From the sequence record NC_070963.1: 64,000 nt of DNA, one strand, 5' to 3'. The translations under genes were made by a program, and so were the position numbers. Below, piece by piece: positions 3,425 through 31,487 of the stretch. The notes beneath the pieces were generated by a model. The model was given only the letters and a program-made list of their open reading frames with translations, searched no databases and had not been told where the DNA came from. The first letter of the stretch is position 1. The number at the start of each line of letters is the position of its first letter.

Positions 3425-5380
3425 ATGGCATTCACGAAGATTGCTGCCGCTGGTATTGGAAGCACAGGAACAGTTACATTAGAACGACTTATTGTAACTG
3501 GAAGCATTGATACTCCTGTGATTACTGGAGCAGCATCTACGGCAAATGTAAGAGCAAATAGTTTAGTTGTATCTGGAGTTTCGACTTTTGGTAGTGTTGT
3601 AGCAACCACAGGAACTTTTAGTGGTAATGTCAGTATTGCTGGAACTCTGACTTATGAAGATGTCACTAATATTGATTCGGTTGGTCTGATTACTGCTAGA
3701 AGTGGTGTAGTAGTAAATACAGGAACAGCAACAACAGCATTAGTTGTTAATGGTAGTGCAAGAATTACTGGTATTTTGACAATTGGAACCAGTTCTGTAA
3801 CTCTTGATGGAACGAATAATCAAGTTAATGTAGGAACTGGTGTTACGATTCATCACACTAATGGTGTTCAAGTTGGTGGAAATACAGTTCATTCAACTGG
3901 ACTTACTGTTAATCAAGTGAATGCAATTGGTATTATTACAGCATCAAGTTTTAGAGGTGATGGTTCTCAACTGACTGGTATTGCTGCTACGACGAATGTA
4001 AGAACTAATAGTCTTGTTGTTTCTGGGGTTTCTACTTTTGCTGCAGGTAGTGTTAGTGCTCCTTCTATAAGTCCAACAGGGGACAGTAACACAGGACTAT
4101 TTTTTCCTGATGCTGATACTATAGCAATTGCTGAAGGTGGTGTTGAGGCATTAAGGATTGATAGTAGTTCTAATATTGGTATAGGAACCAATGCCCCAAC
4201 TACAAAACTCACAATAACAGATGGTGTTGCTCCTTATGCGGCAACCACTGGCGATTTAATTCAACTTAAAAGAGGTGTATCAAATGGTAATGATACAACT
4301 TCTGCTACTGGAATTTCATTTGCCAACAATAGTAATGGATTCCGTATTGCTTATGGTGGAACAAATGATAGATTGAGGTTTATAGATGGCGGTGCTATTG
4401 AATGTCTTTCTCTATTGAATGGTGGAAATACTGGAATAGGAACAGTAAGTCCAAGAGTAAAACTTGATGTAGGCAATGGAAAACTTTTAGTAGTACAAAG
4501 TGGGACTCCTACAGGAAATTATAATTATGGAGTAAATACACACGTTGCTTCAGGTGCTGGAGGAATGCAGGTTACTAGTGGAAGCAGTTATAGTTATTTT
4601 GTTGGCAATTCTACTGATATAATATTAGGTTCAGATCAAGGATCTACTGGAATTAAAGTTCAAGTTTCAAGAACTTGTGGAGACAATTCTTTAGTTATAA
4701 CTTCTTCTGGACAGGTTGTTGCAAATTATAACTCAACAACTGGAGTAGTTAATTCTTTTGGACATGGTGGTTATTATGGATTAAGTGCAAATAGTAACTC
4801 TACAGCATTAGCAGATCAAAGGTGCTCTTGGTTTTTGCGTGGTTCTTTAGAAGGTACTAATAATGAATTAGGAAACTCTGTATTATTAATTCAAAATACA
4901 GGAGGAGCTGCAATTAATATTGGAGATCTAATAAAAGGATATAGAGGTTCTTCACTCATATTCCGTGTATCTGGTGGTGATGGAAGTGTTAGGAACAGCA
5001 GTGGAAGTTATGCTGCTATTTCTGATGAAAGAATTAAACAAGATATTGTTGATGCAGAATCGCAATGGAATGATATTAAATCAGTTCGTGTTAGAAAATT
5101 TAAACTTAAAGAAAATGTTGAAACTTATGGCGAATCTGCACCAACATTTATTGGTGTTATAGCCCAAGAATTAGAACAAATAAGTCCTGGACTGGTTGAT
5201 CAAGCAAAATTAAAAAATGGTTCTTCGGATCCAGAAAGCATTAAATCTGTAAAATATAGTATTTTATACATGAAATCAGTTAAAGCTCTTCAGGAAGCAC
5301 AACAACGTATTGAAACTTTAGAATCACAAGTTTCTTTACTTATAAGAAAAGTTGAAGAATTAGAAAATAAAATTATTTGA
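3425..5380 (+). CDS. tail fibre-like protein with C-terminal peptidase S74 intramolecular chaperone
   Basis: G/S/T-rich beta repeats (NSLVVSGVSTF twice, GIGT motifs); C-terminal SDERIKQDI...GVIAQEL...KYSILY...coiled coil; GATAAATA late-type promoter at 3396. Confidence 0.85.
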   Translation: MAFTKIAAAGIGSTGTVTLERLIVTGSIDTPVITGAASTANVRANSLVVSGVSTFGSVVATTGTFSGNVSIAGTLTYEDVTNIDSVGLITARSGVVVNTGTATTALVVNGSARITGILTIGTSSVTLDGTNNQVNVGTGVTIHHTNGVQVGGNTVHSTGLTVNQVNAIGIITASSFRGDGSQLTGIAATTNVRTNSLVVSGVSTFAAGSVSAPSISPTGDSNTGLFFPDADTIAIAEGGVEALRIDSSSNIGIGTNAPTTKLTITDGVAPYAATTGDLIQLKRGVSNGNDTTSATGISFANNSNGFRIAYGGTNDRLRFIDGGAIECLSLLNGGNTGIGTVSPRVKLDVGNGKLLVVQSGTPTGNYNYGVNTHVASGAGGMQVTSGSSYSYFVGNSTDIILGSDQGSTGIKVQVSRTCGDNSLVITSSGQVVANYNSTTGVVNSFGHGGYYGLSANSNSTALADQRCSWFLRGSLEGTNNELGNSVLLIQNTGGAAINIGDLIKGYRGSSLIFRVSGGDGSVRNSSGSYAAISDERIKQDIVDAESQWNDIKSVRVRKFKLKENVETYGESAPTFIGVIAQELEQISPGLVDQAKLKNGSSDPESIKSVKYSILYMKSVKALQEAQQRIETLESQVSLLIRKVEELENKII

Positions 5381-28084: not shown

Positions 28085-28093
28085 GGTACATTT

Positions 28094-28121
28094 AAGGGGG
28101 GGCAATCGCTCCCCTTTTTTT
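28094..28121 (+). terminator. intrinsic terminator
   Basis: AAGGGGGGGC-AATC-GCTCCCCTT plus T tract. Confidence 0.75.
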
Positions 28122-28146
28122 ATATTTTGTGAGGCATTATTTTATG

Positions 28147-28207
28147 GCAGGTTCGGTGGCGACCTTTGATCAGGCAGCGACCCTGCTGCCGTTGGTGCCG
28201 ATTGTCC
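28147..28207 (-). ncRNA. candidate small ncRNA, copy 2
   Basis: Aligns with 26595-26657; perfect GGCAGC/GCTGCC stem; leftward TAGGAT upstream. Confidence 0.45.
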
Positions 28208-28333
28208 CCTTATCCTACAGGATCCCAGCGCCCATAAAACCGCCACAATGGACAGTTCGCAAGGTGGCACAAGACCCTGTAGACGGAACCCATTGGCACC
28301 CTGTATGATTCTCTCAGTTCACACCACTGAACC

Positions 28334-28636
28334 ATGTTTTCCGCCACACTGACCAATCCCCAATCCTTCGGCGCAACCTACCAATGGGCGATCCTATCGG
28401 TTCTGCCAATGGATTCTGATAAAAAGCGCCACGGCATGAACTCTCCGGAGATCAAAAAGGCGTTGGGTTTGAGTAACGCTGCCCGCACAAGTCTGTGCCT
28501 GATGCTAAAGGAAATGGCACAAAAAGGTCTTGTGCAACGTTATGATCTGAAGATTGGCAATCGTCGCATTGTTTCATACAAGCGTCTGATTCCTCTCCGG
28601 AAGCGTGAAAGAATCGCCCGCTTCATTGGCATCTGA
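28334..28636 (+). CDS. winged-helix DNA-binding protein
   Basis: NSPEIKKALGLS...SLCLMLKEMAQKGLVQR fits a MarR/HTH wing pattern. Confidence 0.55.
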   Translation: MFSATLTNPQSFGATYQWAILSVLPMDSDKKRHGMNSPEIKKALGLSNAARTSLCLMLKEMAQKGLVQRYDLKIGNRRIVSYKRLIPLRKRERIARFIGI

Positions 28637-28811
28637 TACACTACAGGGGGAGAAAACCTCCCCCATTAAACTACACCAAACCACCATGACATTATCACCA
28701 GCATCTAATCTTCAAACCCGCCAGATCGTATGGGTCCGCAACGGTGTTAAGATACATTCAGCACCATCCTACATCTGGTCTGCTCTAGGTCGTAACAACA
28801 AACTTTGAATC

Positions 28812-28940
28812 ATGGAAACTATTCTGACCCCCGATGAGATTCTCCAGTTAGTTACCACTGGAATGGTCGAATTGTCTGAAGATCTTATCATCAGAATGAT
28901 AGAAGATCTCGACGAGAATACACATACAATTCTCGTCTAG
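28812..28940 (+). CDS. small hypothetical protein
   Basis: Hand-translated 42 aa METILTPDEILQL... Confidence 0.45.
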   Translation: METILTPDEILQLVTTGMVELSEDLIIRMIEDLDENTHTILV

Positions 28941-29005
28941 ATTCACATAATCATCTCATACATTCTCGACGAGATGCACACAATCATCATACAATTCTCG
29001 TCGAG
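28908..29005. repeat. CTCGWCGAG cluster C
   Basis: CTCGACGAG at 28908 and 28965, CTCGTCTAG at 28932, CTCGTCGAG at 28997. Confidence 0.85.
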
Positions 29006-29020
29006 AATATACACATTTCA

Positions 29021-29458
29021 TCACACAATACAATAACCTTTTGTTTTTCCAATAGTATATAAAGGTCCTGTGTTTATGTTATTTTCTCTACAAAACTTTC
29101 TAAGATTGTAAACTTCTATAATATCACCTATAGGAGTTTTTATTTTATAACATTTTGCATGAGAATGTTCTGCATTATGTTGATTAGTAACCCATTCTAA
29201 ATTATCAACATGATTATTAGACTTATCTTCATCAATATGATTAACTTGTGGCAAATTGTTTGGGTTGGGAATATAAGTTTCTGCTACTAATCTGTGCATA
29301 TATTTTCTACACTTAGTCTTGGAATCATACAGATCAATATAATAATAACCCCGATAGTTTTTCTGTGGTGTGATTAACTTAAGCGGGTTTCGTTTGTTAC
29401 TATAAATGCGCCCATCTTCTGTCAGAAAATAACCTTTATAAATTGGATGTTCGCGCAT
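29021..29458 (-). mobile_element. HNH homing endonuclease (NUMOD4/HNH_3-type)
   Basis: HRLVAETYIPNP.NLPQVNHIDEDKSNNHVDNLEWVT; ATG at 29458 (MREHP) preferred. Confidence 0.88.
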
Positions 29459-29620
29459 ATCTTTATAGGTATTGTTTGTAATTATAACATAATTATAATT
29501 AACATTCAAACCACAATGGCAGCGGATACCATGTCTGCCGCCGATCCGTCAAGGTCTGACCCATTAGCGTTGCTGATCAAACGGATCTGGTTTTTTGTAT
29601 CCTGCGATACCATTTGATGG

Positions 29621-29674
29621 TTGACCTATCAGGGTCTGGCGCTTAAGTTGGTATCGAACCTTGATAACTGAATA
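29621..29674 (+). promoter_or_regulatory. sigma70-type promoter followed by an rrn boxA-like element
   Basis: TTGACC-N17-TAAGTT, then GAACCTTGATAACTGAATA at 29656-29674. Confidence 0.5.
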
Positions 29675-29806
29675 GATGATCGGATCGCCGCCCTAGGGGC
29701 GGGGTGTGTCGCGTGTCGGGCGGGATCCCACGGGCACCGATTCTCTATTCTTTATAGTTTCAGGTTTGCTTTTAGGTTACACTTTTTCCCTTTCTTTCTT
29801 TACACA

Positions 29807-30097
29807 ATGGATCTGCAATCTAACGCTTCCAAAGTTGTTGAAATGGACGCCAAAATTAAAAAGTTGACCGCACAGTTTAACTCTCTTAAAGATGAGTTAA
29901 TTAGTCAAATGATCGCTGAGAATGTATCAACTATCGACATTAAGCGCCGAAAAGTTTGCCTCTGCCAGAGGCAAACTAAGGACTTTGGCGACACAATTGC
30001 CCGCCTAGAGTTAGAACTTAAAGCGGAAAAGAAAAAGTTAGAAACTCTCGGAGAGTTCACTATCTCCAGTGTTTCAAACTTCATTCAAGTCCGCTGA
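29807..30097 (+). CDS. hypothetical coiled-coil protein
   Basis: ORF track. Confidence 0.6.
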   Translation: MDLQSNASKVVEMDAKIKKLTAQFNSLKDELISQMIAENVSTIDIKRRKVCLCQRQTKDFGDTIARLELELKAEKKKLETLGEFTISSVSNFIQVR

Positions 30098-30155
30098 CAT
30101 TTAGGGGAGGTTATTCCTCCCCTTTCTTTACACTCTCACCATACACTTTTCTACC

Positions 30156-30341: not shown

Positions 30342-30401
30342 GTTACACTTAAGGGGAGACAATTCTCTCCCCTTTCCCTACATTCAACCGCACTTAAAAT
30401 C

Positions 30402-30608: not shown

Positions 30609-30665
30609 GTTAGTTACACTTAGGGGTGACATCTCACCCCTATTCTTTCCACCTTTCACCACACT

Positions 30666-31310: not shown

Positions 31311-31487
31311 ATGAAAAAAAATTCCGGAAATATTTTTGAACCCATAGAGGTTGATCCAATCAGTGGGGATTACTTTATTAAAATCCCAGAGCAAATTATG
31401 AATGAACTCTCATGGTATGAAGATACTGAGATTTGCTTTACTCTTGATGGGGATGAAGTCATTCTTTCTGAACGTGAGAGTGATTGA
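31311..31487 (+). CDS. AbrB/MazE-like small protein
   Basis: Hand-translated 58 aa ...YFIKIPEQIMNELSWYEDTEICFTLDGDEVILSE. Confidence 0.6.
   Translation: MKKNSGNIFEPIEVDPISGDYFIKIPEQIMNELSWYEDTEICFTLDGDEVILSERESD

Follow-up and report, generated by a model that had tools for sequence, protein, structure and literature searches.

A host-like boxA sequence in the leader of a small-gene module of the cyanophage S-SRM01

The DNA analysed here (the window) is a stretch of 64,000 nucleotides from the genome of Synechococcus phage S-SRM01 (NC_070963; Kyanoviridae; 240,842 bp), a lytic T4-like myovirus from fresh water in Singapore; all coordinates are those of the record minus 62,000. Positions 29510–29806 form a 297-nt intergenic gap without annotation, with a G+C content of 0.5–0.59, above that of the flanking phage DNA. 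The gap is bordered on one side by a minus-strand gene for an HNH homing endonuclease (29021–29458; HNH_3/NUMOD4) and on the other by a series of small plus-strand genes, the first of which is gp181. Within the gap, a putative promoter is followed by a sequence that closely resembles boxA, the antitermination signal of ribosomal RNA (rRNA) operons (rrn). An earlier reading of the letters of this DNA (the original prediction) had listed the promoter, the boxA-like sequence, a GC-rich hairpin after it and inverted repeats upstream, and all of these are read directly from the sequence where it had placed them. The central features are the following.

29621–29649, plus strand: putative sigma-70-type promoter, with -35 box TTGACC (29621–29626), a 17-nt spacer and -10 box TAAGTT (29644–29649)
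29656–29675, plus strand: boxA, consisting of the core GAACCTTGATAA (29656–29667) and the extension CTGAATAG (29668–29675)
29807–30097, plus strand: gp181, encoding 96 amino acids, with 59–78% identical relatives in 32 loci

The phage core GAACCTTGATAA shares 11 of its 12 positions with GAACCTTGAAAA, the boxA published for cyanobacteria, which in the internal transcribed spacer (ITS) of these organisms is followed by the D4 element CTGCATA (PMC8461337). The motif GAACCTTGATAACTGAATA covers positions 29656–29674, and the next base, G29675, completes a 20-mer. This 20-mer matches the marine picocyanobacterial ITS form GAACCTTGACAACTGCATAG at 18 of 20 positions; GAACCTTGACAACTGCATAG is common to all known marine picocyanobacteria and is the reverse complement of a published primer (PMC9769826), and it is also present in the ITS of the freshwater Synechococcus strains CS-1330 and UW140. 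The agreement rises to 19 of 20 positions with GAACCTTGAAAACTGAATAG, the form with the CTGAATAG tail that is found in the leaders of Microcoleus transfer RNA (tRNA) arrays and in 16S leaders. A scan for cellular boxA sequences, with one genome per species, yields at least 120 loci. Among the matches listed, the ITS copies read GAACCTTGA[A/C]AACTGCATAG, including those of freshwater Synechococcus CS-1330, UW140 and Vulcanococcus, the CTGAATAG-tailed form heads an array of ~30 tRNA genes in Microcoleus and the 16S leaders of other phyla, and picocyanobacterial 16S leaders carry GAACCTGGACAAC or GAACCTAGACAAC ~390 nt before 16S. The cyanobacterial boxA that the original prediction had quoted, with CTG..TA after it, is thus found in the literature (PMC8461337; PMC9769826), and the phage motif is a host-like boxA, conserved among relatives and located on the sense strand.

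Taken by itself, the 12-mer does not exceed chance: with up to two mismatches it has 22 matches in the window against 15 expected, and the genome has two sites that fit the strict pattern GAACCT[TAG]GANAA, whereas shuffling gives an expectation of 0.44. The boxA is nevertheless regarded as beyond chance because of its 20-nt extension, its sense-strand position after a promoter in a leader, and its conservation. In the 240,842 bp of the genome no other site comes within one mismatch of the 20-mer GAACCTTGAAAACTGAATAG; by our own arithmetic ~3e-5 such sites would be expected. No further boxA copies, for example before tRNA clusters, are present in the S-SRM01 genome. The original prediction is upheld as to a host-like boxA; what is found is a single site heading a short gene module and not a genome-wide strategy of S-SRM01. 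In a BLAST comparison with 827 kb of cellular rrn and tRNA loci the similarity ends at the 20-nt motif, so that only the functional signal seems to have been kept; the phage boxA is best read as a mimic of the signal and not as a captured host fragment. Short matches found by eye between the DNA upstream in the phage and picocyanobacterial 16S leaders (CCGTCAA and CGGATCTG) are attributed to chance, as neither BLAST nor a covariance model supports them.

The relatives of gp181 lie in 7 viral and 25 metagenome loci, three further loci were obtained via DNA patterns, and comparison of the leaders yields 16 distinct variants in 34 loci. Wherever the leader occurs, gp181 comes next, in the same orientation. 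In three relatives (loci L226, L228 and L245) gp181 occurs without the boxA leader, which indicates that the module is separable. Among 12 relatives the core has the consensus GAACCT[T/A/C]GA[A/C/T]AA, with 10 of 12 columns invariant, and a mean pairwise identity of 0.92, compared with 0.54 for the whole leader; it is the best-conserved block of the leader. The variable positions, 7 (T/A/C) and 10 (A/C/T), are the same as those that vary among the boxA sequences of picocyanobacterial ITS regions and leaders (GAACCTTGACAA, GAACCTGGACAA and GAACCTAGACAA). The core is thus kept more strongly than its flanks, in line with the original prediction.

The promoter TTGACC-N17-TAAGTT is very probably real, judging from the comparison of the leaders. 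A TAnnnT element ends 6–9 nt before boxA in all 14 variants with enough upstream sequence, TTGnnn is located at exactly 17 nt in 10 variants, and the three variants without TTGnnn carry a TGn extended -10 element; as the geometry is conserved and the spacer sequence variable, this part of the original prediction holds. In L241 and L242 an unrelated repeat takes the place of the upstream DNA, and the homology shared with the other leaders starts at the -35 box. From the position of the -10 box the transcription start is predicted at ~29655–29657, such that the RNA would begin at or within 3 nt of boxA. A start downstream of the box, which would have been at odds with the original prediction, is thus not what the sequence predicts. 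NusB-S10 recognises just 8 nt of boxA and binds short RNAs (PMC3177189), which makes a 5'-terminal boxA feasible.

Downstream of boxA the leader contains a structured domain and, further on, two sequence elements before the start codon.

29670–29750, plus strand: structured domain of the RNAalifold consensus
29670–29675 and 29745–29750, plus strand: helix P1, GAATAG (boxA tail) with CTATTC, from RNAalifold, with covariation
29679–29683 and 29737–29741, plus strand: inner helix, ATCGG with CCGAT, from RNAalifold
29685–29704, plus strand: hairpin P2, which holds CCGCCC-TAG-GGGCGG (29688–29702)
29705–29736, plus strand: hairpin P3, which holds the near-invariant GTCGGGCGGG (29715–29724)
29745–29765, plus strand: pyrimidine/U-rich tract CTATTCTTTATAGTTTCAGGT, following the structured domain, with a partly conserved [T/C]ATA block
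29796–29805, plus strand: TTCTTTACAC, directly before the start codon, mean pairwise identity 0.87

Helix P1 and the inner helix enclose hairpins P2 and P3. In the domain 93.7% of the cells are paired, compared with 40–58% for slid partners, and compensatory changes are present in 11 of the 24 pairs; none of 500 shuffles reaches the observed values, a count that is not a probability, since the alignment rows are related and the structure was derived from the same alignment, and both controls flatter the structure somewhat. The CCGCCC-TAG-GGGCGG hairpin lies 13 nt after the boxA 20-mer. In four of the eight pairs of P2 both partners differ among the relatives (for example GGTGCC-GGA-GGCATC), and the P2 loop is variable (UAG, GGA, GGGA, UUGA or AUGG). 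The GTCGGGCGGG block has a mean pairwise identity of 0.91, and P3 contains four compensatory pairs. The GC-rich hairpin noted in the original prediction is thus real and covarying, but the analogy with the lambda nut sites that was drawn from it is not sustained: the loop is unconserved, unlike that of a lambda-type boxB, the stem covaries freely, and the hairpin belongs, as one arm, to a larger domain of three helices. The hits of a covariance model of boxA and domain are limited to this clade and one weak P3-like match in an unrelated viral contig (L016); the model finds nothing in the host (picocyanobacterial) rrn loci or elsewhere in the S-SRM01 genome.

For S-SRM01 an additional promoter downstream of boxA, ahead of the start codon, was considered and rejected: the late promoter TATAAATA is absent from this part of the leader, and TTCTTTATA is not a recurrent motif of the genome. 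The relatives L095 and L244 do carry CATAAATG in this interval and may have such a promoter. Genome-wide there are 32 copies of TATAAATA on the plus strand and 3 on the minus strand, before structural genes among others, a distribution that is consistent with T4-type late promoters. No Shine-Dalgarno sequence precedes the gp181 start codon. With the Rfam covariance models no family is found at the gathering score, and none in 29510–29810 at E-values up to 10, which disposes of a known RNA family or a group I intron tied to the adjacent HNH gene. ARAGORN detects no tRNA genes, and a minus-strand tRNA or transfer-messenger RNA, suggested by the resemblance of GGTATCGAACC to a T-arm, was discarded for this reason.

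The product of gp181 is rich in Lys and Glu and is predicted by AlphaFold2 to form one long helix. No PHROGs or Pfam family is found above threshold, and gp181 was rejected on these grounds as an N-like or otherwise known factor. The genome tables contain no annotated candidate for an N-like antiterminator, although no systematic search was made. The genes gp181–gp183 are each followed by a hairpin.

30103–30123, plus strand: terminator-like hairpin after gp181, then TTCTTTACAC; free energy (dG) -15.7 kcal/mol, z -4.2
30351–30374, plus strand: hairpin after gp182, then TTTCCCTACATTC; dG -14.6 kcal/mol, z -4.35
30621–30642, plus strand: terminator-like hairpin after gp183, then TTCTTTCCAC; dG -14.9 kcal/mol, z -4.45

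All three hairpins are trailed by an interrupted U-tract and resemble the strong terminator at 28094, with weaker tails. The sequence TTCTTTACAC that precedes the gp181 start codon thus recurs after the first of them, which is kept in L002 with compensatory changes. The gene behind gp181 differs between relatives. Units composed of a hairpin and TTTCTTT(A/C)CAC, as at gp181–gp183 of S-SRM01 and at 990–1015 and 1265–1290 of L002, separate small genes that vary between relatives.

The boxA 20-mer is not confined to S-SRM01 and its relatives. The 19-mer GAACCTTGAWAACTGMATA is present in 92 IMG/VR contigs, and the position-10-C variant of the 20-mer pattern in 32 more, compared with a chance expectation of ~1–3 contigs by our own order-of-magnitude estimate. 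The viral matches fall into at least 53 contexts, about two thirds of them intergenic by a crude open-reading-frame test, and many have a promoter-like site 15–70 nt upstream with a hairpin in between. In six loci (L025, L027, L055, L089, L254 and L271) boxA follows a promoter-like site and a small hairpin and heads a phage tRNA array, with 5–7 tRNAs within 1.5 kb in L025, L027, L055 and L089. Marine contigs related to T7-like cyanopodoviruses combine promoter, hairpin and boxA with the exact marine host 20-mer GAACCTTGACAACTGCATAG, placed at the head of the early region that is transcribed by the host polymerase. The isolates S-RIP2, S-SBP1 and S-TIP37 have a promoter, a long hairpin and boxA where the early region begins: in S-RIP2 (L285, 2540–2670) these lie within the 600-nt gap before the early genes, and in S-SBP1 (421–441) and S-TIP37 (459–477) boxA lies 420–480 nt from the left genome end. 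In the Bacillus phages Staley, Slash and Stills and in several mycobacteriophages boxA is located just after promoters, in unannotated leaders. In the Slashvirus early region Staley (L251, 2440–2525) carries GAACCTTGAAAACTGAATAA, ~25 nt behind a promoter, and in Mycobacterium phage Pioneer (L252, ~660–760) the boxA-like GAACATTGAAAACTGAAT, likewise unannotated, stands 13 nt after a TTGACA..TAGGGT promoter; the GAACATTGAAAACTGAAT site lies near the right genome end of Fromanvirus phages. Independent phage lineages thus show what is, from these sequences, the same layout with the boxA variant of their own host.

Similar leaders are found in cells. In Microcoleus sp. S13_B4 (L136; boxA at 5155–5174, minus strand) a promoter-hairpin-boxA leader directly precedes the ~30 tRNA genes; L204 and L208 show the same promoter-hairpin-boxA context, with only one or two tRNAs detected by Rfam, hundreds of nt downstream or at the edge of the locus. 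Across unrelated phages and cellular rrn and tRNA leaders, the 19–20-mer sits 0 to ~95 nt downstream of promoters. In Prochlorococcus loci, including L103, L113, L114 and L121, the reverse complement of the 20-mer formed by the ITS boxA and D4 is present between 23S and 5S, ~3.04 kb from the ITS copy, which indicates that the ITS boxA segment also forms one side of the stem used in 23S processing. Two further cellular sites were observed. In a Faecalibacterium metagenome-assembled genome (L115, 4153–4257) boxA is followed, 20 nt on, by the Rfam pemK RNA motif (RF02913, 72.7 bits). The Prochlorococcus single-cell assembly AG-363-C20 (L126, ~1989–2050) has a boxA 20-mer outside rrn, with a partial repeat GAACCTTGAACTGAAT 24 nt later and a Cyano-1 RNA ~1 kb away; this region could be phage-derived or island DNA.

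Several repeats lie between the HNH gene and the promoter of S-SRM01.

29524–29529 and 29597–29602, plus strand: inverted repeat GGATAC/GTATCC
29543–29549 and 29581–29587, plus strand: stem GATCCGT/ACGGATC, then a T-run (29590–29596)
29563–29577, plus strand: 15-nt palindrome ATTAGCGTTGCTGAT, conserved in relatives as ATCAGC-N3-GCTGAT, located ~90 nt before the predicted start
29597–29610, plus strand: GTA-N8-TAC palindrome GTATCCTGCGATAC

These elements are conserved in relatives as sequence blocks, and no conserved RNA structure is found upstream of the promoter. They are missing in L241 and L242, which retain promoter, boxA and leader. The inverted repeats of the original prediction are thus present, though not as a conserved RNA structure or as part of the boxA transcript: being located upstream of the promoter, they fall outside the predicted transcript, and are probably DNA-level sites or the terminator of the previous unit. 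The palindrome ATTAGCGTTGCTGAT may be a regulator binding site. GTA-N8-TAC has the form of an NtcA box. Its GTA and TAC are kept with varying inner 8 nt in L094, L099, L229, L231 and L234, and the spacing is N9 in L095 and L244. In S-SRM01 33 nt separate its end from the -10 box, compared with ~22 nt at canonical NtcA-activated promoters, a difference of one helical turn.

The HNH gene is inserted between a repeat array and the leader and is absent from this place in all relatives examined; its region (29021–29509, minus strand) has a promoter-like site of its own, TTGAAT-17-TATAAT with TG (29509–29481). The array, just past the 3' end of the HNH gene in the unannotated gap 28085–29020, consists of four copies of the palindrome ATTCTCGTCGAGAAT in 33-nt tandem units (28906–29011). 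Other tandem arrays occupy the equivalent place in relatives, with units of CACTGTTTGAGTT in L096, GCTGCTGGTTAGGTGTTGCTACC in L094 and L095, and GGGCCAGCACCA in L241. The ATTCTCGTCGAGAAT array may be a set of protein-binding sites or resemble an origin.

How the leader may work is suggested by its likeness to rrn. We give roughly even odds (about 0.5) to the reading that the element is an rrn-type, N-independent boxA that would recruit host NusB and S10 and allow read-through in an early unit; it is assigned to the rrn-like kind because it has a consensus boxA and would use host factors only. The host-type sigma-70 promoter at 29621–29649, for which the evidence is comparative, would fire and, as judged from the -10 position, the transcript would start at or within 3 nt of boxA. 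From the identity of the sequence, NusB-S10 would bind the emerging boxA and, together with NusA and NusG, convert the polymerase into the pause- and termination-resistant form known from rRNA synthesis, a step requiring host factors alone and no phage protein. The modified polymerase could then run through the structured leader to the end of its U-rich tail and past the leaky hairpin-U sites that follow at 30103, 30351 and 30621, so that gp181 and the variable small genes behind it would be expressed.

The closest known counterpart is the rrn boxA with the ribosomal antitermination complex (NusB-S10-NusA-NusG-SuhB-S4). The phage element shares with it the 12-nt boxA of the cyanobacterial rrn spacers, the extended ...AACTG(A/C)ATAG tail and the location, behind a sigma-70 promoter, on the sense strand of a leader, and no phage cofactor is evident in S-SRM01. 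Unlike the rrn boxA, the phage copy, known here from its sequence, heads protein-coding genes and is followed by a phage-specific three-helix domain. It also differs from both rrn and nut leaders in its place at the extreme 5' end of the predicted transcript: in the rrn leaders of E. coli boxB lies upstream and boxC downstream of boxA, whereas no transcribed hairpin can precede the phage boxA if transcription starts at ~29656. With lambda nutL and nutR it has in common that a phage carries boxA in an early leader, where a hairpin and then terminators come after it; the boxA of lambda, however, departs from the rrn consensus and requires N on the boxB loop, whereas the S-SRM01 boxA has the host consensus. 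The tRNA-array leaders of Microcoleus (L136) and of phages (L025, L027, L055 and L089) also have a promoter followed by the CTGAATAG-tailed 20-mer and introduce a long multi-gene unit, but a hairpin separates their promoter from boxA, and their units encode tRNAs. The stem-loops that punctuate the small shuffled genes recall the mobile promoter-early stem-loop (PeSL) cassettes of T4-type phages, which Arbiol and colleagues reportedly described in 2010, as these also separate small shuffled early genes in a hyperplastic region. In S-SRM01, in contrast, no promoter follows the hairpins, the next start codon being ~30 nt away, and boxA is not known to be part of a PeSL.

A number of points weigh against an rrn-type boxA that brings about read-through. 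The phage boxA was compared with forms of the host clade and not with the rrn of the actual host strain KCZYC6. The -10 box TAAGTT is weak (3 of 6 positions), and a simple promoter scan did not list the site. The start is a prediction, and if it were at A29657/58 the variants with 6-nt spacing would lose the first base or two of boxA. A model with boxA alone does not explain the invariant GTCGGGCGGG or the three-helix domain. The unit may be short, from gp181 to about gp184, and a strong promoter-like site at 31484 is a candidate start of the next unit. NusB/S10 binding, Nus dependence and read-through of the hairpins are conclusions that we infer from sequence. Cyanobacteria are not known to possess Rho. 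The E. coli rrn-type complex is best documented against Rho-dependent termination (PMC4807359; PMC12360218).

A boxA outside the rRNA operons, in the 5' untranslated region (UTR) of a protein-coding gene, is also known from suhB (Baniulyte et al. 2017, PMC5725501), where it represses translation and promotes Rho termination near the start codon. By analogy, a boxA-Nus complex in the 5' UTR could tune or repress the translation or termination of gp181 itself, whose expression would then track the free Nus pool, that is, the state of host rRNA synthesis. The tail of boxA pairs downstream in P1, so protein binding could remodel the leader, and the tight linkage of the boxA leader to gp181 leaves room for a regulatory role. 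However, the suhB mechanism ends in Rho-dependent termination, for which these Rho-less hosts, as we understand them, offer no means. In addition, the phage boxA is located 150 nt upstream of the start codon, beyond the 50-nt window of the suhB study (PMC5725501), and such control of gp181 is considered unlikely. An abundant short RNA ending at ~29750–29765 might alternatively act as a decoy that titrates NusB/S10 from host rrn and thereby aids host shut-off. A 5' boxA followed by a compact covarying structure of ~85 nt and a U-rich tail would suit such an RNA, and the genome has one boxA copy. Yet the P1 stem beside the U-tract is AU-rich and closes a multibranch loop, making it a poor intrinsic terminator; gp181 always follows the leader in the same orientation, with no promoter consensus between them in S-SRM01; and the boxA of other phages precedes tRNA arrays or long operons, which fits read-through better. 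A decoy is therefore highly unlikely.

The complement of boxA-D4 in the 23S-5S spacer of Prochlorococcus, ~3 kb away, and the covarying pairing of the phage GAATAG tail with CTATTC would also agree with a Nus-independent element of RNA processing or stability, in which the boxA tail and P1 provide a site for RNase III/E or a 5' structure that protects the mRNA. The invariant part GAACCTnGAnAA, however, is single-stranded in the consensus structure and no complement of the boxA core is found nearby, so that we consider this function quite improbable. It is similarly hard to believe that the 12-mer acts at the DNA level, as an operator or through an effect of the initial transcribed sequence at +1 to +12, or that the resemblance is fortuitous: the 12-mer does abut the -10 box and is statistically ordinary by itself, but the motif is without dyad symmetry, and its variable distance from promoters elsewhere (0 to ~95 nt) argues for an RNA signal. 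Finally, the G+C content of the gap, above that of its flanks, could betray a neutral relic of captured host rrn DNA. This has next to no probability: BLAST against the cellular rrn and tRNA loci matches the 20-mer alone, picocyanobacterial rrn loci give no match to the covariance model of the leader, and the motif is more constrained than its flanks.

Nus-factor antitermination in phages is textbook knowledge only for lambdoid phages, where it depends on N; elsewhere boxA is taken to be a signal of rRNA genes, suhB being one of a few exceptions in cells. According to one paper, Nus factors have been regarded as dedicated to rRNA, lambdoid phages aside (PMC5725501). The original prediction knew of no report for cyanophages, and a literature search, thin on subscription journals, likewise found none of boxA in cyanophages or mycobacteriophages. 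The distribution described above raises the possibility, put forward here only tentatively, that starting early host-polymerase transcripts with the rrn boxA of the host clade is a widespread and so far unrecognised phage strategy, with an apparent range over T4-like and T7-like cyanophages, Bacillus phages, cluster-A-type mycobacteriophages, gut phages and phage tRNA arrays. The phage boxA sites are unannotated in public phage records, and the published picocyanobacterial ITS primer targeted to boxA matches the cyanopodovirus copies. If the proposal is correct, host RNA polymerase would be switched into rRNA mode without a phage protein, a cheap hijack of the most processive transcription mode of the host, and early phage expression would be tied to the Nus and ribosome-synthesis state of the host; the proposal would also provide a handle on the role of boxA in cyanobacteria. 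In the Rho-less cyanobacteria the role of boxA would be the passing of intrinsic hairpin terminators and faster elongation. The S-SRM01 clade would represent an extreme form, in which the transcript opens with boxA and a conserved three-helix domain is added.

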